Positions 18,301 through 61,545 of a stretch of DNA of 64,000 nucleotides are shown one piece after another. The stretch is from Orbicella franksi (taxonomy: Eukaryota): assembly GCA_964199315.1 (NCBI GenBank), contig OZ116702.1:33852001-33916000 (forward strand), given 5' to 3'. Each line of letters begins with the position of its first letter. Position 1 is the stretch's first letter. Position numbers and translations under genes: made by a program. The notes below the pieces were generated by a model. The model worked only from the letters and a program-made list of their open reading frames with translations. It was not told the DNA's origin and ran no database searches.

Positions 18301-19762
18301 GTGTTTACATGGACGAAAATAACTCCCTCTTGGTATTTAGGCATGCATTGTGTGCTGAAATTGATTATGCTTTGAAGCTCTCCTGCCTTTGTTCTGGTTA
18401 AACTAGTTGTCAAGTAACCGTTTCTTTTCCGGTAGAAAATATCTTCATTTGACGCTGGCGAAACTTCCCAAAAATTCAAGTGGTTTCGCTTCTGGTGAGG
18501 GAAATGTCCCGTTAATTAGATATCTACTGAGACAATCGAAAAATAAGAACGGAAAGCTAAGGTCGGGGGGTTAGACTGTGTTTACCACATCATTGTGCTG
18601 GATAAGGTTTGACTTAGCGGGTTTCAGCGTATCAAACGAAACACGAACTGGTAGTGAAGAATTAATGCTAAATCATGATTATCAACAGGCTTTCTGCTCA
18701 ATTTGCATGATATATAGCTACAACCTTGAATGAAATATAGCGCAATCAAAATTTAATTACGGTTCCTTAGTTCAGTGCGGAAACAAGTTCTAACAAATTG
18801 TACGAGTCTTTGGGAAGACTTGAACCTAGTGCGAAAGTATAGGAGATAAGAAAATTCGAAAAGGAGTATATCTGCAAAGTTCGATCCCTTCAGAAAATCA
18901 TTGAATTCATTCAGTATTTTAACATGTATAAATGCCTCAATAATTATTATTACACATTAAACTAAAATTGCTTGTATGTCAGTTTTTCTGACCTATGTAG
19001 CTGTTGTTCTTGCAGGAATTTTTGTTTATTTCCTAACTACCTTTTTTCTGGATTTATACACCATTGGTTGATTTGTATTTGAAAAGTAGAGATTGAAGGG
19101 CAAATAAGATAACCATGTTGTGTTATTTCAGTTTTCAAATACTTCATGAAGGATAATTTGTTCTTGATGAGTCATTCTTTTGTTCCTTTCAGCTCAAATT
19201 AGTGTTACTACTATTTTGATGATTAGGCTTTGTTCTTAATTTTTTTTTCAATGAATAGGAATTTAGTCCACACCCAGACCCATGCCAGCCCTAAGGGTGT
19301 TTATTAAGGGCTGGGCACTGGGCAAATTGACTGGCTATGAGGATAATTTTGTCTGCTTGGTTTAACCATCTAGAAGAAAGTTTTTGTATAAAGATGTTCA
19401 GTTCAAAACATTTTTCCCACCTGTGAAAACCAGTTGCCACGCTGTTAATGAAATCCTTTAACCCTAATTGGGGCTGTATAGAATGTCAAGAAAATCCCAT
19501 TTTATTTTAACTTCTGGTTTCGTAATCCAAGTTTTTGTTCTTGGTCTCCGAGGATGCTTATAAAATAACAAACGTTGAAATAGTATCGTCAGTATTTAAT
19601 AACTTTCCTTGTCTTTGTTTTATCACCTTAAAGTAATTTTATTGTATTATGTCCTTTATTTTCCAGCTATCTGCTACAAGTTTGCCCTGTTTGAGCCAGA
19701 ACAGTGTTATTAGTTCCTGTTCAACAAGACGCAGCCATTGCAATATTAGTAACAAACTTGGT

Positions 19763-21316
19763 ATGGCCAGTGAACCACTTTTACTGTCAACAGAATCAGA
19801 TTCAGAAAAACTGGAAGCAGAAGATTTCAAATGTTCTAAGGACGTTCCGGAGAAAACTTCTGTCACTGAATGTCAAGGTCCTGGTATGTTAGTTATAGAG
19901 AGTGGTGCAAGTTCATCATCTGCAGGATACTGCTTCTTTTGCACGCAACAGGGGCCTGTCATAAAAGAGAATGTCAGTAACAGTCACAAGTCTAAAAAGA
20001 GAAAAAAGTCACAAAGTTTATTGGTATTGAATTCTGTTGGTTCAAAGAGCGAGAATACATCTCATTTATTACCTGACTCATGTAATAACTTGACCACGAT
20101 CAGGAGTAGTTCAGCATCCATTCTAAGGAGTGCTATTTTAAAGGTTAAGCAGCCCAGCAGGAACAGTTCAAAAGATCAAAGCATTTGTTCGTCACTCAGC
20201 AAGCTTACTGAATTGCGAGAAAGTTGTGGCCTGATGTGTCGCATTTGTCACAGTGGTGATGAAGATGAGGAGCTCATAAGACCTTGCAAATGCACTGGAA
20301 CTGTTAAGTATGCCCATCAGAGTTGTATATTGAACTGGGTTTCAAAATCTGGACATGAAAGCTGTGAGCTGTGCAAGTTCAAATTTAGGACAAAGAAGCA
20401 TAGTGTGAAGTGCTTCTGGAAGGTTTGTTCTGATTCATTATAATCCATCAAATGCTTTTGCTCACATGTGACTAGTCTAAGAGTGTCACATAAGTAAATG
20501 TTCTCCGGCTAAAAGTGTGGAATATGCGAGTGTTGCAAAAAATATTTGAAGGATAATAAACACCATAGCCCCCATTTGACGTAACAAATATGCCCAGATA
20601 TTTGTCCTGGGACATTATCATTCAGTGTTCCTTGAAGCTAGCAGTTTTCCTTGAGTATTTTCTCTCAGAAAGCTGTTCACTTCTCAGAATATGTCCTTTT
20701 GAGTGTCATTAACAGATGTACAAGTTAGAATCAACCATCTAGAATAGTAAATATTATATATTAACTGCTATTCGTGAGCTTCTGTTCATAATAGTTCATA
20801 ATAGTATGACAATTTCCTCACCTGCTGTTCTTTCCAAACTACTGATTTTTGCAGTGGAGTTTTCCTGAAGTAAGCACCAAAGGGTGGCTACACATTGGGC
20901 TTTTCATTGCTTTTGCAACAATGCTACTCACTTCCGTGACGTGGATTATCTGGTCACGTGTCAGTAGGACTCCTTCAGCAATCGCTGAGCGAACCACTGA
21001 GGAAGTGAAGTTTGCTTACATGGTCAATGGTTTGTTCATCGCTTTGGCTGTTGGTGGTTTGTACTTTGACAGTTTGAAACATTTTAAACAGTATTCAAAG
21101 AGATGGGCAGCACTGAACCAGAATGTGGTGGTGGAGTGTTATGAAGAAAATGGCAAAGTCGAAGGGGTAGATGTTAACTTACCCCAAAGGGTGTGTCCCA
21201 GACAGTCCTCTGTCAGCAAAGCCATGGAGGAGAGTGAACCAGAGAGACTTTCAGTAGCTGTTCATACAGAGCCAGATGAACGTGTTGGCAGAAATGATTC
21301 TACAGACTGGGTTTAA
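19763..21316 (+). CDS. Membrane-associated RING-CH (MARCH/MARCHF family) E3 ubiquitin ligase, about 373 aa
   Basis: Exons 19763-20422 (AAG|GTTTGT) and 20855-21316 (TTTGCAG|), phase 0. The C4HC3 RING-CH reads CRICH...PCKCTGTVKYAHQSCILNWVSKSGHESCELC and is followed by two hydrophobic TM segments (WLHIGLFIAFATMLLTSVTWIIW; FAYMVNGLFIALAVGGLYF). An acceptor at about 19666 implies an upstream non-coding exon. The paralogue group cannot be assigned from sequence alone. Confidence 0.9.
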
Positions 21317-39700: not shown

Positions 39701-42700
39701 ACATACATAGAAGAGTTTAGAAAGCTAAAACCAAAAAAAAAAGCTTGAAAATCACCGAATGTTTTCGACTGTTGAGTCATCAAGGAGAATATAAAGAAGA
39801 TGAATCAGTAGTCGAAAACGATTGGCGTTTTTTGAAACTTGTTTTAGGTTCAGTCTGTTAAATTGTCAGATAAAAATAGAGAAAGTTGACTAGGATTTTG
39901 AACTGTGAAGGAACGTGAACTTATAAATTAACCCTAATTTACATGTTTCTGTTTACCGTGTGATAACTGATTCTCGTGTCTTGTTTCCTATTGCAGTGTT
40001 GTTCCTGCATTGTATAACGCGCTCGACCAATCACAAGACTGCACTCAGTTTTCTCAGTTCACTCTGACGTCACAAGGAGAAGTCACGTGAGTTTTCACGG
40101 TTTTTTTTATGTGTAAACTACTGTCATCTGTCCTTGCTAGTTAACCACGATTTTTTTTCTTTTCACAGCCCGGACGCGACACCAACCAGTACCCCTGGTG
40201 AGTTCTTTGTCAAGTCACTTCAAAGACAACGTTGATTTTTAAAAGAAGTGTCTTTATTTCATTTCGTAAACACATTCTCACGCGTAGCCTTCTCAGAAAG
40301 CGGAAAATCTAGAAAACTAAGCATAAATTATGCAGCTTATTTTATACAATATATCTTAACATTCCTCTTCATAACCGTTGCCGAGTTTAATAAATCGTTA
40401 TTTCATGTTCGTTAAATGAACGAGAAATTATCTGTTTAGTAACTTGTTTATTTCCTGTTGATATCTGCTCCTTTCAGTGGAACTGGTGTCATTCAAATTA
40501 GTTTTATGTTTGCTTTCTCATTGTTATTTTAGAAGAAGAAAAGGATCTCTCCCTGGTACGAAACAACAATGGCGACGAGTTAACGTTGAAGAACAAGAAA
40601 GAGCTTGAGGCTGACCCAGTTTCGTCAGGTGTAGAGAAGAGTGAAGTTAAAGATAGCAACGAAACAACAAAGAAGACAGTTAAAGAACTTAAAACTGTAG
40701 ACAGTGAAAAGGAAGTTGAGGAGGTGATGGAGTACGGTGCTGGCGAAATATCGCATGACGAAAGTGAAGACGATGCTGAAGAAAAAGTAAACGCTGCTAC
40801 CAATAAAACAGCAGAAACGGTTGAAGATGTAACCACAATTGAGAAAGAAATGCAGTGCGGTGATGACGAATGCGAAGTGACGTCACCTGACGTCATACCT
40901 TCGTCACAGACGCCAAGTTTTGAGTCTCCGTTCCAGTCCCTTAGACGAGTGATGATTCCGCTCGAGGCCATTTTGCCCAGTTCATTGGAAACAATGAGAA
41001 ACAAAGGGAATTCAGAAAGAAAGCAACTTGAAAAAACGGAAGGGATTAAAGAAGATGAAGCAGTGCTGGAAACAAAGATGGATGTATTAGAGACAAATGA
41101 GGTTGACGAATTGTCATCTGTGAAACCAGAGGAACCACCCGCTACTAAAATGAAGGTGTCCCCAATCGCCAGGCGAACAAGGAGAAGATTGCAACGGAAA
41201 ACCAACGTCGAAAAGAACCCTTCCCGCGAGGAACCCGAAGACGAACCCGGAGAACAAGAGGTCAGCGAACTTATGCACAAAGATCCTGAAAAGTCAAATG
41301 AACCAACCGTCACAATGAAACCCGCTGAACTAACTATCGCGGGCGTAACCAGAGATGCAACGTCGTCTCCAGTCCTCAGCGCCAAGAACAAGTTTCTGCG
41401 TCCGTTTGCAGCAGGTGGAAGTCCTTGTCGTGTGACATTACGCGGGAGAAATTCACCATGCGTTTCACCGACAACTGGAATTTTAAAGAAGTGGCCTGGT
41501 AGTAAGCAGGCAATTGACTCGCCCTCTCCTCCTGGAAAGGTATTTTTGCCGTTCTTGATTTAGAAAATCAAAAGTTCATTGCACGATTTGCAAAGAATCA
41601 ATGCATGAGCTCATTAGCGCTTTTGCCACCCAGAAATTTTACAGTTTTTGAAAGCCTTGAATAATATACCCAAAGATCCAAGAATTTCAACTATCACTAA
41701 GTTTCACAAGCTCTTTAAATTCGTACCTAGCATGATTCTTTCTCAGCTGCGCAAAGTGGTGTGTCAACTTAAACCATAACTGAAGCAACGATCGCTCCAT
41801 GTCGTCATCTCTATGGCAGTTGGTTCATGAACATTGGTTTTCTTTTCAGGTGCGGAGAGTGTCGTTTGCTCTTCCTGAAAAAGATGGCAGTTCTGAAGAG
41901 TCACAAGAAAAGTCCTTAGAAACAAATACCACTGCTTTTCAATTGAAGACGTCCAGCTCTTCTCCTTTTACGGCTATTAAGCAGGTATAAAAAATCAAAT
42001 AATTACACTGCTAGGTCTTCTAACCGAGCTAGTGAAAACCAGTCTTAAGCCACGTTAGTTTTAATTCCGGGAGCTGATGGGCGAAATAAAGTCTTTGTGG
42101 TCCGGAGAGTAAGATGTTTGACACTGAAGGAAGTTTGTTTTTCCCTTTACATTTCAGCGGCGACCTGTGCCTGTAAGCAGTGACCTTTGTACTCAAGACC
42201 TGACTGACTGTATGTTCCCGGATCTTGTGTCTTGCACTGCACCAGTTGAACAGATACTTCCTTCCATTCTCACCATGTCCTGGTCACGTGGTATGGGTCA
42301 CTTGGTACGCGCGCAGAATATTCACACCATTGGAAGCTTGTCAGCTCTCAAAGAGGAACAGGTAACTAGGGGCGATGGGATGTTTGGTGACTTTTGTCTA
42401 GGGCCAATTCTTCAATTAAAACAGGTTTTCGTTGAAAATATTGTGTTTATTCATTAAAGCAATTGTTTCCAAACGCAATAACAGATAGACGCTGATATCT
42501 AGTTTATAAAATTCAACAAAAGATCCTTTCATGAGACGGGCTTTAGTCGTTTTAGTTTCAGTAGGAAGGCTCATTGCGTGTCGCGAATATTTAGTCACGA
42601 AATTTCAAATCGCCACAGTATTTTAACCGTTTTGGTAAATATACACCTCATGATACACAAACCTTTCTAGTTGTGAAAATACTAATAATTTGTTTTAAAA

Positions 42701-44047
42701 AAACTGTTGTTTTTTAGGTGAGGAATTTGCCCATTAAATCGCCCAAGGTACCAACTCTGAAGAAGGCCTTAAGAAGATTTCACCAAAGTCAAAGAGGCAG
42801 AAATTCAAAACCACTCGCTGCGAAACTAACGGCGGAAGCTTCGCTGAAAGAGGAGAATAAAAATATAGAAGGTACGGTTGGTCATGTGACCTTTCCAATC
42901 AAAAGAAGAAAGTTAGCACTGAAATGGGTTGCCGGAAATAAAAAGAACGGGACCATTTTAGAAATCAATTTCGCCGTGTGTTCCAAAACTAGTTACAGAA
43001 TGACATCATTTCTCGATAATTTCCGTAACGTTTCTGTAACTGACCGTAAAATTTTGGGTACGCTCTTTCTCGTTTTACTTCAATGTCGCCGAACCTTACT
43101 CCTTTCTCGACCTGAGTGTAATTTGTCCTCCAAAAAAAGGTTTCAAATTTGAGTGTGAATTGCTGACCCGCTTGCTTTCTTTTATCACAGAGATTGATGC
43201 CTCTTCTGAGCGTGCCCAGCTCCCAAGCGAGGCCCACGTGGTGATGGAGCCAATCAGCATGAAGGATTCTGTTGGAGATAACCTGGAAGCGACATCCACG
43301 GGTGAAGAGTGCTTAGAGACAGCCGAGGAGTTGAGGGGTGAAGAAACTGGGTCTACTGACGAGTGCGACTCGAATGAACCCGACATTGAAAGCGTCGTTG
43401 ATGACGAGAAAGTGGGGTGCAACAAGGCCTTAGAGTCAAATGAACCCGAGATTATCACTATCACAGAGGGGGTGAATGTTTCTGGTGACGCCATGTGGGG
43501 CAGTAGTGAGGGAGGATCAGCGGACCATGTGAATGAACGCTCGGGCGATGAGGAGTCAGCCAGTCAAAACCGTACTACGCATGACTCCGACGCTATGGAA
43601 ACATCCGCTGACATCGCCACCCCACAGCGTGAAACTTGCGCCCAGCCGACTAAATTATTCTCATGCGAGAAATCGGTCGAGCAGAGTGCGAGAATTGATG
43701 AAACGTCGACTCACGAAGAGGATTTATCAGGAGAGGTCAATGACAAATCCAAGCAAAACGAACTTACTGAATCAACGAAGGCGGCCCAAGTTACTAGTGA
43801 AGAATCTGCTACGCTCCCCTCGACTGCAGGCACCGAAAGTAATTTAGCTGTCGAAGAAGAAGGCTGCAGGGAAAAGGAGAAATTCTGTGACTGTTTACGT
43901 TCCCTAAAGGATCTTGCGTTACCTGACGTCTTGCGTGATTTGTCCAGTGAGGAGATTTTCGAAGCGCATCACAACCTGACGGAAATTATGTCAGAGGTTG
44001 TCCAAGCTTTGAGGGGCCGCTGGCAATCTCCGAGATCCAAGAAATAA
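24885..44047 (+). CDS. RIF1: Telomere-associated / replication-timing protein RIF1, 39 coding exons, about 1955 aa
   Basis: Phase-consistent exons: 24885-24994, 25423-25498, 26390-26475, 26798-26835, 27932-28035, 28475-28566, 28704-28797, 29187-29285, 29458-29550, 29813-29866, 30421-30505, 30727-30776, 31084-31191, 33050-33380, 33496-33609, 33841-33903, 34009-34103, 34312-34469, 34891-34995, 35122-35197, 35586-35690, 35852-36001, 36175-36405, 37064-37224, 37577-37637, 37718-37813, 37961-38067, 38153-38210, 38407-38439, 38678-38854, 39276-39377, 39528-39607, 39997-40086, 40169-40197, 40533-41539, 41850-41984, 42158-42361, 42718-42871, 43191-44047. Hallmarks: QVDAYL, AWNILIDNFALSP, TNDVNQGDALEHDFS, AEANICCEEL, FWNATF, LTEHQKE, PP1 motifs GILK...VRRVSF, MFPDLVSC, LPIKSPKV and C-terminal RGRWQSP. 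Confidence 0.95.
25819..26042. mobile_element. 224-bp hAT-like MITE in RIF1 intron 2
   Basis: TIR CAGGGCTCGAAAAAA / TTTTTTGAGCTCTG. The flanking 8-mers GATTTGAG and GACTGGAG match at 6 of 8 positions (possible decayed 8-bp TSD). Confidence 0.65.
27684..27714. repeat. (ATT)n microsatellite (another at 61546-61585)
   Basis: Direct reading. Confidence 0.9.
30801..31000. other. Assembly gap (200 N) inside RIF1 intron 12
   Basis: Run of N. The flanking exons join in frame (…LIMTPLR|NLAVKERNES…) and are collinear with vertebrate RIF1, so no coding exon appears to be missing. Confidence 0.95.
31353..32646. mobile_element. About 1.3-kb non-autonomous TIR element in RIF1 intron 13
   Basis: TIR CAAGGCTGCTGCCTAA / TTAGGCAACAGCCTTG. 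Subterminal GG(C/T)(G/T)CCTAA motifs occur at both ends, and TTTTC flanks both sides. No transposase ORF. Confidence 0.7.
38895..39251. mobile_element. hAT-like MITE in RIF1 intron 30
   Basis: TIR CAGGGGTGCCACAG / CTGTGGCAACCATG with repeated internal TCAGGGAAA motifs. No clear TSD. Confidence 0.65.
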
Positions 44048-46882: not shown

Positions 46883-47843
46883 GTAACGTTTTTTTAAAAA
46901 AAAAAAAAAAACCTTGAACAAGAAAATTGACAGGCGAAGCTTCTAATTATTACGCCAGAAATTGTTTAATCAATAACCGGCTAATTCCACAATTGACATG
47001 TGTTTAGCTTGAAACCTGACCTAGTATCTAAACAATAAACTGTTAGTGAGCTTATCTTAAAAAATTTAACGCGCATTTTTAGTGATAAACTCGTCCGTAA
47101 TCTGTCTCTATAGGTCTCAATCTTAATCACCTTTGTTTCTTTGCTATTTTTCAGCTTACTTAACTGTAATTTAAAGATTACCTTAACTTTTCTCTAATTG
47201 TGTTGCATCGCAAAAGTGTCTTTAAAATATCTCAAGGCATATCTCATCGATTCTCACGTGATAAGGACGGAAGTTCGCGAAAGGACTAAAATTAGTGCCA
47301 GTCTCCGAAATTTACATGAGCGTGCGGTAGTTGCTAGCGTGGTTGCTATGTGCCAGAACCTCAAAAGAGAGTTTAAAAATACGTGTGGCAGTCTCTTGTC
47401 TCTATAATTTATTTAAGAACAACCAATTATCAAATTGCATATTTGAATATAATAACAAACGAAATTAACCAGTTGCAGTTTGTTCCATTGGAAAACAACA
47501 ACATCAACAATTTATTTAAATATAAGTTAAGTGGATGTCGAGCAGATGCCATTATCTTGTATCATTGAGCTTCATTGAGAGAGCGTCCAGAAAGTTTCCT
47601 TTAAATTGCTCATTTCCTCTTGTAAACTGTGTATTTAACTCAGTTTGAAGTTTGCACAGTTTCAGTATTTTTTTGCAGAAAACCAGCAGCAAACACTATT
47701 TCCCTTACTTCATTGATTCCCTCTGACTAGTTTTAAGGGAGACGAGGGTGCATTTTGATTTCAAAGTTCACGATTTAAAAGGAAGGGACTCTAATCGACG
47801 AAATACAGTATTTACCTGTTGGTGTTGATTTAGTTTGTTTCAG

Positions 47844-50800
47844 ATGTGGTCTCTCGTGTTTTAATGATTTGTGGGTCCCTCATGGCAATAGCTAATGGGC
47901 TGATTCCATCTCTGGGAGCCATGATCTACGGCAAGATGACGGATGAGCTTGTTATCCATGAAAACTACAGCTGTACGCTTAACGAGAGTATTACTTCTGT
48001 TAGATTAAGAAACCTGGTGACACTGGAGATGATTCATCCCCGGTTAGAAGGAATAAACGTTACGGAAACAAAATCGCTTGAAGTTACGGTAAACGAAACT
48101 GGAATACAGGTGAAAGTTGTCGGCTTGAACGGTGAGCTGCTAAACCAAACAGTTTTCGAGGGAAGGAACTCAACTCGTTATAATACAACATCAGTGTTTC
48201 TTAACGGGACAACTCTGAACGGAACAGAATTAACTGGAATTGAGGTAAACGGGACTCGTGTTGACACGGTGAAGTCAAAGGAGAGAATTTCTGTAAAGCA
48301 AAAAGATAGCATAGGTCCTGTTCAGAGTATTAAAATGTTACCTGTGACACCAACATCCAAAGTTCTGCCCGAAACAAATAATGTAAATTACACGCTGCGA
48401 AACATCACGGAAAACTGCCGCTTATCTCAAAACAGAATTGAGGAAAAGATGAGCAAATATGCCCTTTATTATGTGTATGCGGCCATTGGAACATTGCTTT
48501 TTGCGCTCGGACAGAATGTGATGTGGAACATTGCTTCAGAGAGGGCAGTTAAAAACTTGAGCGAAAATTTAACAGATGCAATGCTGGACAAAGATCCCGG
48601 ATTTTACGACACCAAGATACATGAGGGTGTGGTTAACTTGGAAAGTATTACGTAAGTATGACAAAAAAATTGTTGGTGAATAGAAACATGTTGCTTTGCT
48701 ACGAACAAATAAAGTAAACATTTCAATAGACAAAACGAAGCAAATAAATAAATAAATAAATAAATAAAAATAGCATTTGTGCATCAATCGGGACAAAAAG
48801 AAAAATAGAACTTCTTGCAGCCCCGTGAGAGATTTGAACTCTCGACCCCTGGTTTACAAGACCAGTGCTCTAACCACTGAGCTAACGAGGCTGGTACACT
48901 GGCCGTTGTCGTTTATTTTTATTGTTTTTAACGTACCTGTTTTTACGCGTCTGTGCAGTATTTTTTAACGCGCAAATATAAGACTCATCACATACTTGAG
49001 TGAGAACATAGGATAAATGTGTAATATGTGATAGTTCCCCTGGAAATGAACCAAAAGTTCAAAGTCTCATCCCAGAGAAGAAAAGTTTTAGGTGTAGTAA
49101 GATGTTATTGTCTCTGTGAGCCATGGTACACATCCAACAAGGTGGACAACTTTTTACGGCTTTTTACGGCTTGCAGTGTGACCTGAAATAAACTACTTCT
49201 ATCATTTTTTCGTACAATGATTTGAGACCCTTAATTTTAATTTTAGTTACACAGATAAAACTGTTAAAAGTTATGTGTAATAGCATGTCAGCCTCGTTAG
49301 CTCAGTGGATAGAGCACTGGTCTTGTAAACCAGGGGTCGAGAGTTCAATTCTCTCACGGGGCTTTTGCATTTTTTTGTAATTGTTTTTCTGCTTGATGCG
49401 AACTCCAATTCTCAGTTATACATCCTTAAATTGTATGTTATACATTTTATAGAGAATTTGTTGGTCCTTTTTTATTATAAATATCTACCTGTCTAATGGT
49501 GTAATGATCACCATTATCTGTTCTACCAAATCAAAACGTCTTTTTTTGTGTGTCAGAGATCCTCGAGAAGCTATCAGCCAACACGACCTCGACGCGCTGA
49601 GCGGGGGCCTGGGCGGAGAGATAGCGTACTTGATACAGAGTGTATCAAATGTGATGTCTGGATTTCTTGTCAGCTTCATTGAAAACTGGAAAATCACGCT
49701 ACTAATGATGGCTGCTGGGCCTGTCCTAGCGGTTGTTCAAGGTATCGCGCACAAGGTAAAGGTACAGCAGTTTTATCGTCTTTTAGAAATTAAGCAGGAT
49801 AAAAAACAACAACAACAACAACAACAACAAAAAACAAAAAAAACAAAAAACAAAAAAACATTGCAATCCCGTGAGAGATTTGAACTCTCGACCCCTGGTT
49901 TACGACCCCTGGTACGATGACATTCTGGTCGTACCTGCACGTGTAAATTAAAATTAATGATATGATGCCTCTGATCACTAAAGCTGTTTAGTGATTCTGC
50001 GCTCTTTCTAGCTTCACTTGCTCTAAAGCGACTGCGGAAAAAGTAAAGGTATACGTTTTTTCATCCATTTTACAGCGTTCAGGTGGTTCTCGCCACTATT
50101 TGTTGTAAACGTCATAGCCTCCAGGGCCGGAATGTTCGAAAGCCGGTTAACGCTAACCTAGGATAAAAAGTTAATCGAAGTATTCATTTTTCTTGTGTAA
50201 AAATGTTTTTCATTGCTTATGTTTTGTGTAGTTTGTGATTTTTCAAACTCAAACCTGAAGGGCAAACAATATAAACAGAAAACAGCACCCAAAAGTTACA
50301 AAACTCAAATAAAAATTTTCTCTAATCTAGGGTTAGCTTAATCGGGCTTTGAACAACCCGGCCAGTTGCTTCCCGCCATTTTTTCTTACCTACGTCATAG
50401 CTTCCAGTTGTTTCCCGGCTTTTTTTCTTGAGTGCGTCATAGTTTCTAGTTTCTCAGCTTTACGTGGTCCATACGTTACGTCTTCGCCACAATTTGCTGC
50501 GTAAGATACACTTTCTAGTTTTTGTTTCTAACTGACTAAGATTAAAATAATTCTGCATTGCCTTATGAGGATATTGATGATAAATCATGTGCGAACTCGC
50601 CTAAATATACCATGATGTGCAAACAAAATTACGAGTGCAACTGAAATTGACAACACTGGGAGCAACATACTCTATGTTACATGTAAACTCCTTCTCTATG
50701 CATATAATTATTTTTTACAGTTTGAACAAACATTTACACAAAAAAATCTCTTGACTTCTCAAATGGTGTATATTCTTCTGTGATTGTTGTCAGGTGCATG

Positions 50801-53800
50801 GCTTGTCAAGCAGCTCCTAAACGTGTACAATATTAACAAACAAACAACAACAAAACTTTATTCCTTTTTCATTAATTTACAGCCATGAATTTTACGTTAA
50901 TGATTTGTCTTACATCTACACTTTGTTGTAATATTCTTGTTAGGTTGAAAAATTTGTTATGAAACAAAAAGAGGAGTTGAAAAAGCGAGCCAGTGCAATG
51001 GCAAAAAAGAGCCTGGGATCGATAAAAACCGTGGCGTCATATGCTGGAGAGAAAATTGAGAAAGCACGGTAAGTCAGAAGTTTTCTTTTCACTTTGCTTA
51101 ATTCGCTTTAATAACAGTAACTTTGATCAGACCTCTTTCATCAACAGATACGCTAGCAAGATAGAGGCGAGCAACAATCTAAACAAACTAAGGAGCCTTG
51201 TTCTTGGCATACAGAGTGGAATCTCTACTGTCGTCACCTTCGGCTTCCTTGGTTTGGGCTTTTGGTGAGTTAACGTACATTTTATCTCCAGTAAAGGTTA
51301 AGGTTTGTTTCAACGCCAGTTTGGACCTTTGCTGTTCTTGATATCCAATCAGAAACTATCACGGGAAGTCGTTCACAACTCCTGAGGACAATCTAGGGGC
51401 ATCTCTGAAAATCTTGCTGAACCACTAAGGAACTTTTAAATTCTTCTCTGTTATCTTTATGATTGCGGTTACTCAGACTACAGAAATTCCTGACGAAAAA
51501 ATTACCCTCAACCAATTCTCTGAGACTTGTTTTCATCTAGACTGGCAGTTCATTATACGAAGTCGCTAATCAGTTCAGAGGTGAAAATAGCATGAAGTAA
51601 ATGAGTAAATGCATGAATGAGTGAAAGAATAAGAGATATATCTGAGAATTGGAGTTCGCATCAAGCACAAAAAAAAGAGAAAATACAAAAATTGCAGCAG
51701 CCCCGTGAGAGATTTGAACTCTCGACCCCTGGTTTACAAGACCAGTGCTCTAACCACTGAGCTAACGAGGCTGCCATGCCACATCAGTTAACTTTTAATA
51801 ATGTTGTTCTGTAACTATGTTTCACAGTTCAATTCTCTAATGTTTATGTGTTAGATACTAACGGAATCTCCGCTAAAATCTCATCTAGGTACAGTTCCAC
51901 TCTATTACCAGGAGGAAATGTGACTCCAGGAGCTTTGATGACGGTCAGTTCCTTTGCATGTTTGTTTTCTCTTTCGTTTGCTACTTTTGTTTTTTCGCTT
52001 ATTCAAGTTTTAATGATGAAGTACACATAGTATACCTCAAGTACTCTTTTTTCGCTGATTATTATACGCCAGACGTTGTTTTATCTCCCTAATTATATTG
52101 CGAAGTCATTTTAAATTCGACGGATTTTTTCCGAAATATTGCGTGGAAACGATGTTTTCGGTTAAGTCTGTGTTCTGGTAAAGTGACGCAACAGGTTGGC
52201 GGTTATTTCCTGTATCTCTACTCCCTCTTGGATGGGTGCTAGTCCATAAGAGGGTTACTTACGTTATACCCTGTATTAAATTCGCCGGTACCCATCTGTA
52301 CACCTGGGTGGAGAGAGGCACTTGTGTGTGAAAATGTCTTGCCCAAGAACAAAACAAAATATCCCCGGCCAGGGCGATGTCTTGAAGTGTTTAATGCGCA
52401 CTGCGGTCCTTATATTTCTGTTGACTTGTCCCTTTTGTTCAATAAAGATATTTATGGCGATCATTTCTGGAGTGATGCAAATGGCAGGAACCGGAGAGCA
52501 AGCGGAAGACGTCGGTGACGCCAGAACAGCGCTTTCATCTCTGCTCGGAGTCTCAGAGTCGGTAAGATCTTTTGTTTTATGGTATATTTTTTGATTCGAA
52601 ATGCTACTCTCCTGAGCGTTGTGCGGCAACCCGAAAACAGCAATGATGGAGCCAAAGATGCAACAGAGGCAACAAAGATATACATTTTTTTTCTCGTAGG
52701 CTGATGAAGACCCATTTGACAAGGCTACCAGTCAACTTGACACAGTGTTTGGTAAACTGGATGTTTTCAATGTTTACTTCCATTATCCCTCCCGACCCGA
52801 ATATCAGGTATGATGTTTAGACGCACAGTGGCACGTTTGGCTGCTTCACTTTACTTCCTATTGTTCAACTAAATGTTAAAGTTCGTCCTAATTTTGGTCT
52901 GTAATGAGGAACTTAAATATTGTAGTTTTTCTAGACAAGAAAACACTCATAAGAATTAAATCAATTTTGTTCTTATTTAGGCGAACTTTGAATAGAGAAT
53001 AATTCAGTCCTCTTTGTCTTTTTAACGAAATCAATACGTTGTATGTTTTCCATCTCACAGGTGTTGAAGTCGATTAACTTCACGGTAGAAGAAGGTCAGA
53101 CGATTGCCTTGTTGGGTGACAAGGGTAGCGGGAAAAGTGCACTTATAAAATTGCTGCAGAGAATTTATGATCCACAGACTGGGAAAGTAAGACTGTAAAA
53201 CTATAATGTATTCTCAACGGCTCTCTGCACGCATTGCATGCCTATGTCACGAGTTCACAAAAAAAGACTAAATTTCTCCTGACTTCAACCTTTCTTCCAT
53301 GCGGTGGCCTGATGCATCATTCCTATTTAATTTTCTCAGGGTATCGTGAATTTCTTTATTTTAAAGCACACGTACTTATGTTTGTCTTTATTTTTGACAC
53401 AAAGGTGAGGCTCGATGGACAAGACTTACGTTTCCTTGACCAGCGCTGGTTTCGTCAACAAACTGGGATAGTACACAAGAAACCCGAGTTCTTCAACACT
53501 TCAATAGCAGATAACATTGCATACGGAAAGGGTGACGCGACTTTTAAGGAAATAGTGCGTGCCGCAAAGGCTGCTGGGGCGCACGAGTTCATCACAGCAT
53601 TTCCAAAAGTAAGTTACAGTAGGAATTTTTGAATATTTTTACAGCAATCAACCAGCAGTGGAAATTCCTTTTTCTACGAGGCCTTACGACCTGCAGGGTA
53701 AATAACTTATATGGGTTGAAACTAAATATCTTGAAGGCTGTCTGTTTCATTGTCATGAAATAACGAAGTCGCAAATTTGAGGTGTAAATCTATAAGTATC

Positions 53801-56800
53801 TCCTACACTTTAGGGATACGCTACCGTGCTTTACGACGACGGATCGCCGCTGACATCCTACCAGAAACATTTGCTAGCGCTGGCGCGGGCAATGATCAGA
53901 AAGCCCCGGATACTGCTGTGGGAGGAAGACCTGTCAATCATGGACAACTCTGCTTTAAATGCTCTTACGAACTACTTAGATCAGGTGCGTGTCAATAAAA
54001 AAAAACGCTTTTATGACGGTGTAACCTTGAGAAGGCGATTTTACCTTTTGCTAAAGGATAATCGTAAGCTAAATACACTGATTAATCAATGCAAAGTTTT
54101 AAACTGCATCTGCTCCGTAACCATATTGTGTTTCAGGCTCGCCGAGGTCGCACCACAGTCATTTCAACTAGTCACGTGTCAGTAGCTCGTATTGCTGACG
54201 TCATTATTGTTCTTCACAATGGTGAAATAATTGAACAGGGGAGTCCTGAGGAACTGATGTTATCAGGAAGGGCATTCAGATACTTAGCTACACTTCAAGT
54301 GAGTTAAACCTGATTTCAAATAAGTAAGACTACGTCTATTCGTTCTTGACCTTGGGTTGGTTTAAATAGCAATAATTTTCGTCACATGATCTGAAACTTA
54401 AAGCAGCGAGCTCACACTTTGCCGATGAAGACTTCGAGAGCAGGCCACGTGCTTCGTTTACTTTGAATTTTAGACCCTGTGGGGAGAATTGTTTCATTTC
54501 AAATGATTTCTGGTTTTCTGCCGCCTTGGCAGGTGCCAACGTCTTCAGCGCTATCTAGTTAATTGTGGGAATTGCGGTGGCCTCTTGGTAAGCGTGCTGG
54601 ACGTCGGACGAGGTGATCCCAGTTTAAGCCCTTGCATGAACAAGGTTTATAAATAGAAAGCGACGAATTAGATGTTGGAGATCACTCTGTGGTGGTCTAG
54701 CATGCCATCCAAGGGGACTGGAAACTGTTAGCTGCTTCATGCTACTGAGACCTGAGATAAGAGCCGACCGGATGAGCCATTAAGTTCAAGAACAGACTTC
54801 ACCTACCTGCCGTTTCCTCACAGAAAGAGTTTATAATCGCTTGTTTTGTTTTTGTTTCAGTATTTTGAGTCTCAGACTGTACACCAAGAGAGGTTAATGA
54901 AAACTGGTGAGATTGACGGCTAGTATTGTACACTATAAATTTCTTAAAACAAAGTACTTTTAAGATCTTTATTGAAATTATTTGCTTTAATTCAGTTTCA
55001 GTCTTATTAGAGCCACCGCCGGTCAAAGACGGCATCGAAGAACTGGAGGCTAGTTTAAATCAGAGTCAGGAACAGACTAAAGAGCAAGTAAAAGGTTTCA
55101 TATCAAAAATCCGTCAGATAATCCAAGACAAGGTGACAAAAGCATTCAGCAATTGCTTGTTACTTGAACTAACACGACCATGAAGCATCATATGCATATA
55201 GTTAAATTTCGAAAAGGGTGGAAGAAATCAATTACATAACGCATAAGACTACTCTTCAGTGAGAGTACGATGGCCTCATGGTTAGTGCGCGCGACTCCGG
55301 CTCGAGTGGACCGGGTTCGGGGACATTGTGTTATGTTCTTGGGCAAGACACTTTACTCTCACAGTGCCTCTCTCCACCCAAGTGTATAAATGGGTACCGG
55401 CGAATTTCACTAACATTCCATACACGGGGGAGTAGAGAAATTCCTAGTCGCTTCACGCCACGGAAACCGGGATATGCTCCGGCCTAATGGGCCACTTGGC
55501 TCGTATGCAGACTTAACTTACAGTGAGAGTGTTGGGTTTGCAAGCTTATCGGTAATTTGACATAATATATACTTACGGATAGTGGGAATACCTTCGGCCG
55601 TATATATTTTTGTGGCGCTTTCCTTAGCCTCAATCAATGCTTTTTCAGGCATGACTAGCGGCAGCTGTCTGAAAACATTTCTCTGATAATCAGATATTCA
55701 TGGAATGGCTAGGAGGGAAATGTAGTTAGCATGAAAATGGTGTTGTGATACAATTTGTCCAGACATAACGTTTTAGTTACTTTTAAAAGTATTTCAAGGG
55801 ATTTTTGAAACATTTAATTGATTTCAGTTGAATGACGGAAAGTCCGCATACAACATGATAAGGATGCAGCTTCAGGACTTACCATTGTTGTTAACAGGAG
55901 CTCTGGGAGCTGCTATCACTGGAATGGTCGCCCCAGGTCTCTCTTTTCTTTTCGGCGAAATACAAAAGGTAACAACATTTATCAATTAAATTACATAAAT
56001 GGGGCTTTTCGCTCCGTGTACAGAAGAGTTTTCATTGCTATAAGAAAAACATACTTCTGTAACGCAAGGACCAGTTCTTGCAAGTGTTTTCGTTAATAAC
56101 TAAGCGGGGAAGGTTGACGAAAATAAATTCATCCTCAGAATAAAACATGACTGTTACTTGGTTGCCATAATTAATAAATATGTCCTGAAGAGTCAACATC
56201 GTATGAGTTCATGATTCACAAGTTATTCCCCGAACATCTTTCTCAGGTTTCAGTCCGCTAGGAAGGTTAATCGTAGAGTTTATTCCTTGCGCAAAACGAC
56301 AGTAAAGTAGGTTTCTTTTCTTCTTCACTACTGCTTCACAAAAGGTAGTAACTATATGGAATGTTTGTCTTCTTAGTTTATGAATGATCCTCTGAGGGTT
56401 GCACGTGAAGGGCCATTCTGGGCAAGCATGTTTGTTGTGTTAGGAGCCGTAGTTGGATTTGGTGGCACCATTGAGGTAAGAATTTATTTCCTCAGTGGAA
56501 TGCCCAGATGCATGCTGCGAGCCATCGTTTGTGTTTGCGACTGTATACTCAGCCGACTTTATGATCTCCATACTTAATGCGATCGATCTTCTAGAAATAT
56601 GGAGTCTATCGCCAGTTCATTTATAGGATATGTCTTGTTTTTGAATGCTATAGGTGATTTAGGCTAAAAAAATAGATGTGGATATTTATTATATTTTAGA
56701 AATTTATGCTCAGTTTCGCCACTGAGAAGTTGAGAACAAGACTGCAAAAAATGGCCTTTGATACATCAATAAACAAGGTTAGTGTCATTTTATTTCAATT

Positions 56801-59800
56801 GTCTTCATGGACAGATCTCATTAAAAGTTTAACTGATAAATTATATTGCGTTCAATCAGAACTCAGTTCCTCAAATTCCAGGGATAGGCGACTCACTTAC
56901 CGTATTCCCTGGAGCCGGAGGACAATTTCCTGGTGTACCTCACTCGATGAGGATGGGACTACCCACTGTTCCTGGTGCACCCACCGCGCAGTTACCATCC
57001 ATAGGTAATGCCCCTTCTCAAATGTTCCCTGCAGGAGTCACAGGGCTACCATCTGAACAAATACCAGCTTCTGGTCTGCACGCAGTTGGAAATTTAACAC
57101 CGCATTTGCCATCTGAAATTCCATCTTCTCCAGGATTTCCTAAAATGGTCTCAACAGGGTTACCAGAAATTGGAGCCATTTCCGCTGCACCTCAAACACC
57201 AGGCTTTCCCTCGGGTAGCTTTTCAGCAGGGATATCTACACCGGGATTAGCGCAACATGGTTTACCATCAAACATGGAAACGGCACAAGGCCTTCCCAGA
57301 ATGCCAACTAGTTTAACTCCATTGAACCTAGCAGGAACAGGGCAGATGTCATTGCCGGGATTTGCTGCCGGTCAAGTCCCATCTAATAGCGGATCTTTAT
57401 CTTTGGGATTACCCTCTAATTCAGAAACTACTCCAGGAATGACAGGGATATCTGTTGCTGGTCTACCTTCGGGTGTACCGTCAGTCCCTGGTCTGCCACA
57501 AATACCCGGTAGCGTTCCCACCGGAATCACCCCATCAGGTTTGAGAGCTGGAATAAGCCTTCCTAGTCTTCCAACACAGTCTAGTCAATCTGGAATAGCA
57601 GTATTTAGATTGAACCCTGGTCAATTACCAACTGGAACTCATGATTCATCATTTGGGGAAAGCGGAGGCAGTATGCCCCAGATTCCCGGACTGGGAACCA
57701 GAGTTCCTCTAGCAGTTCCTGAAATCAATTCTGGTATGTCACCACAGGTTTTAGGAATGCCTACAGATATAACATCAGCTGCGAGAATGGTGCCCCCTTC
57801 CACAGCGATAGATTTTCCTGGTACAGCTGGCCTTGGAATGGGAGGTTATGGGGCGGTGATTCCTGACCCACAAGTAAATTCTGGTACGTTGCCACCAGGG
57901 TCATCAGAGGTTGCAGGAATGCCTACAGATTTAACTCCAGCTGCTGGAATGGTGCCAACTTCCACGTCGATAGGTTTTTCCGGTAGGGCAATGATACCTG
58001 GCTCACAAGTTAATTTTGGTATGGTACCACAAGACGGATTATTTCCCAGCTCCACTGCAATACCGACTGGAGCACAACGCTTGGGTGATACCGTGATTCC
58101 TACCAATCCATATGCAGGATCAGTTGATGAAGTGGGAGTTACAAAGCTGCAGGAAATGGGACTCCCGACAAATATGCCGAACCAGGACCTTTTGGTAAGA
58201 ATAGATCTATGCGAATCGACACTGTAAAGCGATAAACTAAGTGTTGACGAGTTCTGGCTGCAAAAATCCTTGTGAATATAACTAAGGAAAAACCCTCAAT
58301 TATTCTTCTTCTTGCAAGTCACGTTGGATAGCAAGCGATTGTATTGAAGACTCCAACCTCGCTTTAAGATTTGATATCTTTGGTTTGATATGGCTTTTTT
58401 GTCTCAGGACTCTTTTAGGATTCTGAAATTGAACGCATATAGAAACAATTTTATGATTTTGAACTAAGAAGTTTTGCTTTACTTAAGGTTTTACCAGATC
58501 CACAAAAACAGGCGGACCTACTCATGAGCCAAGTTGAAAAGGATGTAGAAGCAGCTTTGCAAAACGTGAGTAGTGTTTATTTCCAGATTCGCTTTGTAGC
58601 TGGCTTATTCGTATATATCATAGCTCTCTCATCCTGTATGGAAATTGAACCTAACTCATTTTAGCATTAGAAGAATTGTTTTTAAGAGATAACTGATGTG
58701 CGCACGTTTTAAACGATTCTACTCCCTCAGTTTGCTTTTTCCTTACCAATCAGTCCATAGGCAAATATCTTGGCACCAGGGTCCAGGAGACCTTTTCGTC
58801 CGTATCCACACTTGGTATGGCTTTATACAATGGGTGGAAGATGACACTTGTCGTGTTAGCTGGACTTCCAGTCATTGGGCTGGCTAATCGTATTCAGCAG
58901 AATGAAGCCGATGCTACTGTTGAATCAGAAGGAGTTGAAGAAGTGAGTGTTTAATACATGTAACATGTAACAGTGTAGCCATCGCTAACGCGTCACACGA
59001 CGCTTTTTCGAATTAGTAGAGAGAATCGTCATTACAACAAATCGGTTCTGCCGTTTTGAAATTGTAATTTAATATTAATACAATTCTTTTCTGTTCATGC
59101 TAAGACACTTACCCTGTTCTAATTACACATTAAATTTTTGAGAGGCAAAAAGGTTAAGATAAGAGGTGATGTCCAAGAAAAAAATTATTCGGCTATTAAT
59201 AGATCGGCCAGCTTAAAAGCAATCATATTTTGGCTCTTTTTAGAAACAGCAGTTCTGTTAATGACCTTTACTACATTAATTATAGCTTCTCAAAACAAGC
59301 TTCAAGAAAATGGAAACAATTTCAGCCCTTGGAATGGAAAACAAGTTCGTCAAGAAGTATAAGGATGCTATCTTCGAAAAATACAAGTAAGAATTTATAT
59401 TTGTTTTATAATTAATTTCTACGTTAAATCTGGGAAAGCAACCACGTTTTTAGCAGATCTTATACTTAATGTATTATACATTTGTTATGCTCTTTTTTAC
59501 AGGCATGCGTTGAAGAAAGTCATCGCCAGTGGTTTTGCCTTCGCTGTTGGACAAGCTATGGTGTTTTTCATTTACGCAGGCGCACTGAGGTTCGGTTGCT
59601 ACCTTATCAGCATAGGAGATATGGCAGCTATTGAAGTCTTGGGGTAGGCAGCAGATTTCGTTTCCACTGTAGTTTGCCATTATGCATCCATTGCAGGAAA
59701 AAGAATCCTTCTTTGAAATTGAAATACAGTCGTACTTCCTATAATTAATGGTCCTAGTCAGGAAACCAATTGTGAAAAGAGAAGCTTTGTTGCAGACGGA

Positions 59801-61545
59801 CGCAAAGTGGACCAGGGTATCTAGCATTCAGCAACATTGAAGCCGGCCCATACCCAGTCGGTCGTATTAACGGAATATATTTGAATTATTACAGTAACCT
59901 AATCTTTCTTTAAAATGATGTCATTATGATTGATCCCAATCGATTCAAAACACAACTGACACACGATGTCCGCTGTCCCAACTGGTGATCGTTAGTTGTA
60001 TATTATGGGGTATTTTGGACGTAGTCGTGTTAACCGAGGTTTTCAGAAAATTGACTAAGCCGTCTTCGGGTCAAAAAAGAAATAACCGTAACGCAAGGTT
60101 CTCCGATTTACAAAGAAATAATTTAGTAGGCTTACAGCATAATTTATTTTCTTGTTTCAGTGTGTTAATGACAGTGTTGTTCGGTTCTTATGCTACGGCC
60201 AACTCGCGAGCACCGCCGCACGCGCATGAAGACACCGAAGAATCGCTGAACAGATTGTTCGAGTACGAGGCAGCAAACGTGGAAGATCACATAGGTGATA
60301 AGATGGTGAGCGACAATCTCCTCCTGGCTCTGTTCCACCAGCAGTAAAAGAAAAATTAATTACATTTAGAATTATTTTATGGCAACGTACACGATTAAAC
60401 GGAGCTCAGGGTCATCTCGAACTTGTTTTGAAGCCCTCATTGCACACAGTGGTAAACGTAAAATGGACGTGGAAACAAATAACAACTTAGTGACCCAGAT
60501 TCCTGCAAAAGTAGTTAGTTTTGTTGGATAACATTGCCATGTATCTCTCTCGGTCGATTTTCCTGCAGCCGGGCAATAAGAAAATTCCTAATATGAATAC
60601 GTCTCTAAATATTTGAAGTCACCATGTTGTAATTTATTTCTCAAAGGACGAAGTCGAAGGAAGCTTGGAATTTAAACATGTGGAACTGCCAGACCCTCTA
60701 CACAATGGCGCTCCATTGTTGAGCCAGTTAAACGTGAAGGTCAGCAGTGGACAAACATTAGCCATTGTACCGCTGGACAACGAAAAAATCAATCCATTTG
60801 AACTTTTGTTGGAACGTTTCTTTGATCCTTTCAAGGGTGCATTGGTAAGTAATGTAATTTCATTTTGCTTCAGGTTTTGAAAAAATAAAACCTGTTTATG
60901 AAACGCTAAAATTTGAACGCATATAACTTTGCATCACATTTCAGTTCTTGGATGGTGTGGACATACGCAGTTTGGAACTTTCTTGGTTGCGATCCCGGCA
61001 TGCAGTGGTGTCCCATCGCTCGTTTCTTCCACATTGTAGTATTGCCGAGAACATCGCTTATGGTGACAACAGCAGAGAAATAACGAGGCGCGAGATTGAA
61101 GACGCCGCGTACTCAGCTTATGCACATGAATTTATAACGGATCTAACAAAGGTGAGAAACTGGACCTTTGCTGCGGTCATAAAGGCTCTGCTACAATCTT
61201 AGGCAGTTTGCTGAAGCATTCAGGAATATTATTCCAGGGATATTTATGCTTTTGAATGTTTGTTTCAGGGCTATGACACAGTCCCCAATGAAGATCAAAT
61301 CCAGTTGACCGACAGTCAGAAACTCAGGATCGCTACAGCACGGGCTATTATCCGTGGACCAGCAATCGTTGTGATTGACGAGTTGGAACAGGAAGATCAG
61401 GTGAGTCTGTCAGTCAGTCGGTCAGCCGGATGGTCAGTCAATCATGTCGGTCAGTGAGTCAGTGAGTCAGTTGGTCCGACAATCAGTCAGACGGAAATTC
61501 ATAGATGTAGTGATCCATGCTATGCAGTGATTCATATAAATGAAC

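Follow-up and report, generated by a model that had tools for sequence, protein, structure and literature searches.

An ABCB-type locus with a long proline- and glycine-rich open segment

The DNA analyzed here, which we call the window, is a 64,000-nucleotide stretch of contig OZ116702.1 (assembly GCA_964199315.1, positions 33,852,001 to 33,916,000) from the coral Orbicella franksi. At ~47.8-62 kb of the window, the + strand carries a gene of about two dozen short exons related to the ATP-binding cassette (ABC) transporters. The subject of this analysis is a segment inside that gene at 56860-58194 (+), 445 codons (1335 nt) long and free of stop codons. Both of its ends are in phase 0, with an acceptor reading ttcaatcag/AAC and a donor reading TTG/gtaaga (slashes mark exon boundaries). 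A first-pass annotation made from the sequence had described an open, symmetric phase-0/phase-0 exon-like segment of 1335 nt at this place, and its boundaries, length and frame all held. In window coordinates, the features of the region are as follows.

56700-56777, + strand: upstream 26-codon exon, KFMLSFATEKLRTRLQKMAFDTSINK, phase 0, with AG/../GTTAGT boundaries
56778-56859, + strand: upstream intron, 82 nt, with a CAG acceptor and a branch-point-like CTGAT/CTGAC at 56833-56837
56860-57039, + strand: conserved N-terminal module of the exon, NSVPQIPG.GD...FPGAGGQFPGVP...GLP.VPG...QLPSIG, among the better conserved parts in 9- and 20-sequence alignments
56947-58227, + strand: annotated stand-alone coding sequence (CDS) P0025, 426 aa, from Met30 of the exon to a stop inside the intron
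57722-58030, + strand: degenerate tandem units of ~45-54 codons, ..QVNSG..P....GMPTD.T.A.GMVP.ST.., seen as direct repeats
58060-58194, + strand: conserved C-terminal module of the exon, ..P.YAG.VDE.G...LQEMGLPPNMPN.DLL, ending in D-L-L
58195-58487, + strand: downstream intron, 293 nt, with donor GTAAGA, between the insert exon and the exon at 58488
58488-58565, + strand: downstream 26-codon exon, VLPDPQKQADLLMSQVEKDVEAALQN, phase 0, with AAG/../GTGAGT boundaries

The open frame around the segment extends from stop to stop over 464 codons (56833-58224), which is far beyond chance in DNA of ~40-48% GC. Within the exon, GC content is 0.31 at third codon positions and 0.58-0.59 at first and second positions, a coding signature. 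The encoded peptide is 15.1% G, 14.8% P, 11.9% S, 8.1% T and 4.3% M, with 6.7% charged and 3.4% aromatic residues and neither Cys nor Trp. Compared with shuffles of the same peptide, GLP occurs 9 times vs. 0.8 expected, [LIVMF]P[ST] 23 times vs. 3.5 expected and G[LIVMF]P 15 times vs. 2.6 expected, the latter two counts being reached in 0 of 2000 shuffles. PQIPG is present in 3 copies. Composition and shuffles thus agree with the first-pass description of a P/G/S/T/M-rich peptide with recurring GLP and PQIPG and few charged or aromatic residues. A Pfam search of the exon matched no family, and its nearest neighbors in the ESM Atlas were P/G-rich proteins with scores of 0.73-0.74, low values that serve as a lead only.

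The middle of the exon is indel-rich and made of degenerate ~45-54-codon units. Two direct repeats, at 57738-57823 and 57900-57985, are 81% identical, and a three-copy repeat family within the exon has spacings of 150 and 135 nt. Tandem Repeats Finder reported no tandem repeats in the exon because the units are too diverged; a direct repeat search shows them.

Exons of both halves of the host gene, on either side of the insert exon, gave Pfam ABC_membrane matches. The best solved-structure matches to a piece of its first transmembrane domain (TMD1) were ABCB19 and ABCB1, and the exon for its second nucleotide-binding domain (NBD2) matched the NBDs of ABCB4 and ABCB1 with E ~1e-15. Judged by this homology, the host gene is an ABCB-type (P-glycoprotein-like) full transporter, a homologue within the type IV ABC exporter family. 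The two flanking 26-codon exons are too short for Pfam and returned no result there. The upstream one encodes the cytoplasmic extension of transmembrane helix 8 (TM8) and ends at position 18 past a conserved Glu, while the downstream one supplies the remainder of a coupling-helix segment and the first part of the TM9 extension.

The host protein lacks a competent set of Walker A, signature and Walker B motifs. Its NBD2 (60638-60877) has PLDNEKINP at Walker A instead of the GSSGCGKST of ABCB4, within an NBD that otherwise aligns well. The translated signature motifs read LTSYQK (NBD1) and LTDSQK (NBD2), and other ATPase motifs are altered too, so that, as far as motifs can tell, the protein is unlikely to be a working pump. 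The gene is nevertheless maintained and not a pseudogene, as the dN/dS (ratio of nonsynonymous to synonymous substitution rates) of its ABC exons is 0.04-0.22 vs. eight other corals. The first large ABC exon (47834-48652), which codes for a very long extracellular loop 1 rich in N-x-S/T sequons, shares only 62% identity with its counterparts in two other coral contigs (L005 and L008) and evolves faster than any other ABC exon (dN 0.23-0.30). The introns of the gene hold scattered short repeats, 84-97% identical and some of them inverted, at 48781-48893, 49244-49420, 49834-49903, 51637-51817, 52278-52367 and 55318-55407. One of these families also matches an intron of L005, and the repeats are probably small mobile elements.

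Conservation and drift of the exon across corals

The conservation check that the first-pass annotation had proposed was run, and splice signals, frame and position proved to be kept in at least 11 coral loci. At least 11 contigs from other corals (L001-L003, L005-L009 and L020-L022), four of which cover the ABC gene wholly or for the most part, carry an orthologous P/G-rich frame flanked by the same pair of 26-codon ABC exons. In these orthologous loci the upstream exon ends in ..AFDT.INK and the downstream exon begins with VLPDP, and the exon order of the host gene is the same in L005-L009. Detailed comparisons used a nine-locus set (the window, L001-L003 and L005-L009), and residue conservation was taken from a separate 20-sequence alignment. 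Across the nine loci the upstream exon is 85-100% identical, always 26 codons long and always in phase 0. The downstream exon is 92-96% identical in the seven loci where it was recovered (L001, L002 and L005-L009).

The signals expected of splicing are conserved together with the frame. All nine loci share an acceptor AG/AA(C/T)TC.G..CCTCAA and a donor TTG/gtaag, and the donor is GTAAG or GTGAG in all loci examined. A branch-point-like motif, acTGAy, lies ~25 nt before the AG in the window, L001, L002, L006, L007 and L009, and motif and AG are kept even where the upstream intron is 42-50% diverged. An in-frame TAG includes the acceptor AG in L002 and L009, so that the frame there can be entered only through splicing and not from upstream. 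The exon measures 1335, 1326, 1323, 1257, 1236, 1185, 888, 756 and 561 nt in the nine loci, all multiples of 3, a 2.4-fold range between species of 187-445 codons with L003 the shortest at 187. In DNA-level alignments of the window with four orthologues, 21 of 21 exon gaps were multiples of 3, vs. gaps of 1, 2, 4, 8 and 19 nt in the flanking introns. Neutral simulation at the observed divergence predicted 4-10 stops in the exon, with a probability of finding no stop that ranged from 0.014 down to <0.0002 per pair; none was found. Splice signals, phase and frame are therefore conserved across species in the manner of an internal coding exon.

Selection on the residues themselves is weaker. Exon dN/dS is 0.33-0.54 for distant pairs, with bootstrap intervals below 1, and 0.71 (interval 0.55-0.94) for the window vs. 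L001. The better conserved parts of the exon include its N-terminal ~60 and C-terminal ~45 residues. Its few invariant residues sit at the C-terminal end (P440, N441 and D443 in 20 sequences), next to L444 and L445, which are at least 90% conserved in the same alignment. Turnover of whole units is visible in individual loci: L009 lacks exactly one 150-nt unit from the repeat region, and L008 has the N-terminal unit in three copies. Composition was held throughout the nine loci (P 13.5-19%, G 13-21%, aliphatic 21-25%, charged 3.6-8.9%), and enrichment of [LIVMF]P[ST] and G[LIVMF]P was kept in all of them, with z of 4.5-10.6. The exon thus appears to be selected for its frame, composition and motif density, and little for residue identity, making it a case of an exon that is kept by these properties while its sequence and length drift.

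Placement at intracellular loop 3 and predicted disorder

The first-pass annotation had placed the insert at intracellular loop 3 (ICL3) of TMD2, and the location after TM8 was borne out: the exon maps to the cytoplasmic loop that follows TM8, where ICL3 has its coupling helix. We compared residue spacing in three reference loops, ICL1 and ICL3 of ABCB19 and the coral protein's own ICL1. The distance from the conserved Glu to the first aromatic residue of the coupling helix is 21 residues in all three. In the coral ICL3, the distance from Glu to the V of VLPDP is also 21 residues when the DLL at the end of the exon is counted, and 18 if the exon is skipped. With the loops aligned by this spacing, ERAVKNLSENLTDAMLDKDPGFYDT (own ICL1) against EKLRTRLQKMAFDTSINKDLLVLPDP (ICL3 with DLL), the invariant Asp443 aligns with a conserved acidic position of the reference loops, and the W-F aromatics of the coupling helix are replaced by V-L. 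Pairwise alignments of the coral ICL3 with the reference loops were weak (scores of 7-37), so we infer the placement at the helix from spacing.

This arrangement suggests that the coupling-helix segment has the last residues of the exon, P-N-x-D-L-L, as its first turn, and that the insert lies directly N-terminal of a retained, non-aromatic, helix-like DLLVLPDP segment and does not replace the coupling helix. The first-pass annotation had gone further, proposing that coupling between TMD and NBD is broken here. As stated this is not supported, since the DLL restores the 21-residue spacing before the retained helix-like segment, and it is unlikely that the insert is an accidental break in energy coupling.

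AlphaFold2, run on the exon with the 20-sequence alignment, gave a mean pLDDT (predicted local distance difference test score) of 37.8 and no helices or strands. The only part with raised pLDDT was the C-terminal module (54-57), with a helical turn at the final DLL. With no predicted stable structure, a composition of the disordered type and fast evolution with indels, the exon most likely encodes an intrinsically disordered loop, a prediction that agrees with the disordered domain proposed in the first-pass annotation. Three other identities were considered and set aside. An extra transmembrane segment was ruled out by hydropathy, whose maximum 19-residue value is 0.99 and too low. A mucin-like extracellular domain was ruled out by topology, which makes the loop cytoplasmic. 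A condensate driver of the FUS type was ruled out as unlikely, with too few Arg, Tyr and Phe. Elastin-like coacervation through the aliphatic residues of the P/G-rich chain is possible, to judge from composition.

If spliced in, the exon would separate the TM8 extension from the ICL3 coupling helix by ~442 disordered, uncharged, P/G-rich residues. Its array of degenerate ~50-residue units with G-Phi-P-(S/T) motifs would grow and shrink by whole codons. With canonical topology the loop would be cytoplasmic and would emerge beside NBD2 of an ABC core whose ATPase motifs are degenerate. Given that degeneracy, the most likely role of the loop, next to NBD2, would be that of an arm for docking or tethering, or of a steric regulator. 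As an arm it could be flexible and multivalent, offering docking or tethering to partners that bind proline motifs on a non-pumping ABC scaffold; alternatively it could sterically tune the contact between ICL3 and NBD2. A bolder version, which we regard as rather unlikely, holds that in stony corals a catalytically dead P-glycoprotein homologue serves as a membrane scaffold whose repeat-built arm of 190-445 residues, inserted right at the joint of TMD2 and NBD2, recruits cytoplasmic partners by its G-Phi-P-(S/T) motifs or forms an elastin-like coacervate at the membrane, with the state of the ABC core gating recruitment through the anchoring of the arm at the coupling helix. If true, such a scaffold with a gated disordered arm would be an ABC-based signalling device of an undescribed kind.

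Alternative explanations and comparison with known systems

We consider it likely that the segment is a real, conserved coding exon of an ABCB-type gene in stony corals and that it encodes a disordered loop at ICL3. Several observations weigh against this reading. The role proposed for the loop is inferred only. Two large protein databases held no protein that joins the exon to ABC sequence, and searches with the exon protein gave 10 representative and 17 homology matches, all of them ORF-sized (open reading frame; 63-460 aa) and from unspliced coral contigs. RNA sequencing runs that contain the stretch come from coral samples. Two poly(A) RNA sequencing runs carrying the same species label gave 0 reads on 55700-59700, a result that we rate as no test. 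Over the same interval, contigs from two metatranscriptome runs span introns and exons alike, and one of them crosses the 82-nt intron unspliced; neither these unspliced contigs nor the zero-coverage poly(A) runs contained a spliced junction that includes or skips the exon. A separate gene is annotated over the exon in O. faveolata, as discussed below. For near relatives, exon dN/dS is 0.78 (window vs. L006) and 0.94 (window vs. L009), with intervals that include 1. Finally, there is an exception to the conserved frame in one lineage, where the exon of L020-L022 is 1220 nt long and its halves are open in two frames.

These three contigs (L020:176-1395, L021:1-857 and L022) are Tara Pacific metagenome contigs of one coral lineage. 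Removal of a GT-AG interval, CAAG/gtaaca...ccaacag/G, would bring the two halves back into one frame in both L020 (957-1054, 98 nt) and L021 (449-525, 77 nt), and a 21-nt indel between these two contigs falls within it. Either an intron was gained within the exon, or the lineage shares a frameshift.

The alternative that survives best is a regulated cassette exon, with both isoforms in existence, the skipped form as the main or canonical one and the long form restricted to certain tissues, stages or stresses. The exon and both of its neighbors are in phase 0, so skipping would preserve the frame, and alternative exons typically show high dN/dS and variable length. The absence of poly(A) reads for the gene and of any exon-containing spliced form in databases also fits. 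On the other side, skipping leaves ICL3 three residues short and removes the invariant Asp, which favors inclusion as the native state. Conservation is also comparatively high at the two ends of the exon, and flanking introns as short as 82 and 293 nt favor efficient splicing by intron definition. The RNA data, which gave no test either way, showed no skip junction. On balance we think a mainly skipped cassette improbable, and inclusion as a regular coding exon remains the reading that we prefer.

Much less probable is an independent, nested single-exon gene of 426 aa, which would start at Met30, stop within the intron and have a promoter and poly(A) site of its own. The first-pass annotation had named a nested gene as a scenario that would overturn its account, and this scenario matches the public annotation. 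Over 13.8 kb the window matches GCA_002042975.1, a short-read genome of Orbicella faveolata (PMC10905781), at 99.27% identity, and P0025 is annotated there as a separate gene; P0025 is also present in NCBI, UniRef and nr. In that annotation (L010:10001-15030), a separate 417-aa model of an ABC C-terminus stands beside it for the 3' half of the ABC gene, and no gene is called on the 5' half. The RNA-library contigs that run unspliced over the exon could likewise be counted in its favor, but they also cover other introns. The exonic share of aligned bases was ~52% for metatranscriptome run X2 and ~71% for run X1, vs. 54% of the stretch, and at such roughly genomic proportions the contigs look like DNA or pre-mRNA.

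An independent gene would be expected to show a conserved start and conservation confined to the annotated CDS, and neither is found. Met30 is absent in four of the nine loci (L002, L003, L005 and L008), leaving no conserved start codon. The 29 codons that precede Met30 show conservation (dN/dS 0.24-0.37 in distant pairs). Conservation begins exactly at the AG acceptor with its branch-point motif and ends exactly at the GT donor. Reading through the donor adds VRIDLCESTL before a stop codon at 58225-58227, and this tail varies in sequence and length between species and is not conserved in distant ones. The downstream intron (58195-58487) contains no AATAAA or ATTAAA. Because of the non-conserved Met30, the conserved codons upstream of it, the variable tail and the lack of these signals, we read the annotated 426-aa gene as a modelling artefact at a weakly expressed locus, though it stands as a rival until RNA is seen. 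The public O. faveolata annotation appears to split the ABC gene, to miss part of it and to treat the exon as an orphan protein. Coral ABC inventories and orphan-gene counts would then need correcting.

The least probable explanation is a decaying or neutral relic, in which the Orbicella lineage has stopped using the exon, or even the entire gene, and the frame is left over: the high exon dN/dS vs. the two closest relatives, the zero poly(A) reads and the degenerate NBD motifs would fit, but the lack of stops where neutrality predicts several, indels confined to multiples of 3, purifying selection on the ABC exons vs. the same relatives (dN/dS 0.18-0.22) and the retained composition and motifs all argue against it.

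Elsewhere in the window, two long open frames on the + strand, 40502-41560 (353 codons) and 43040-44044 (335 codons), are rich in Glu, Asp and Ser and look like large disordered exons of a neighboring gene. A RING-CH (MARCH-like) zinc-finger gene occupies two open segments at 19637-21313 (+), and a gene resembling G-protein-coupled receptors lies on the minus strand at 1289-2616, with adjoining open frames at 1289-1654 and 1981-2616. There is a 200-N gap near 30.8-31.0 kb.

How does the coral protein compare with known ABC proteins? It shares with ABCB1/P-glycoprotein, ABCB4 and plant ABCB19 the order TMD1-NBD1-TMD2-NBD2, a long extracellular loop 1 and the ICL1 motif D-x-G-F-Y-D. Unlike them, it would carry a disordered insert of 442 residues from the TM8 extension to the ICL3 helix, that helix has V-L for W-F, and its Walker A is degenerate. 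Neither this gene nor inserts in the intracellular loops of ABC proteins came up in literature searches, which also showed no published case of a coupling helix with a large disordered insert.

ABC proteins can also serve as regulatory subunits and not as pumps, as SUR1 and SUR2 (ABCC8/9) do. The likeness lies in an ABC fold that is under selection without transport-type catalysis, which on the coral side is suggested by the degenerate motifs together with a dN/dS of 0.1-0.2. The SUR proteins retain nucleotide binding and lack an ICL insert. In composition, the segment resembles elastin-like and other P/G-rich regions, among them the 'DERPC proline and glycine rich' cluster, with P+G of ~30%, aliphatic residues of ~24% and few charges. 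It differs from them in showing no detectable homology and no regular repeat of the VPGVG type, and in being an internal loop of a membrane protein.

Another parallel is the R domain of CFTR (ABCC7), which is largely encoded by one big exon. Together with the R regions of Ycf1 and MRP1 it is likewise a large disordered cytoplasmic segment in a full-length ABC protein. These R regions are charged, controlled by protein kinase A (PKA) phosphorylation and located in the linker between NBD1 and TMD2, whereas the coral insert would lie inside TMD2 at ICL3 and is nearly uncharged and P/G-rich. The R regions of CFTR and Ycf1 are the best-known disordered ABC cases (PMC11361370), and such regions regulate through contacts with the NBDs (PMC13257379, PMC11361370). 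In a 2026 survey (PMC13257379), the disorder of ABC proteins was placed in flanks and in linkers between domains, and the cores were ordered. A large disordered region inside a TMD, at the exact joint with the NBD, would be a new site, the known ones being in linkers and termini, and the insert, if real, would serve as a natural experiment on the tolerance of the coupling interface.

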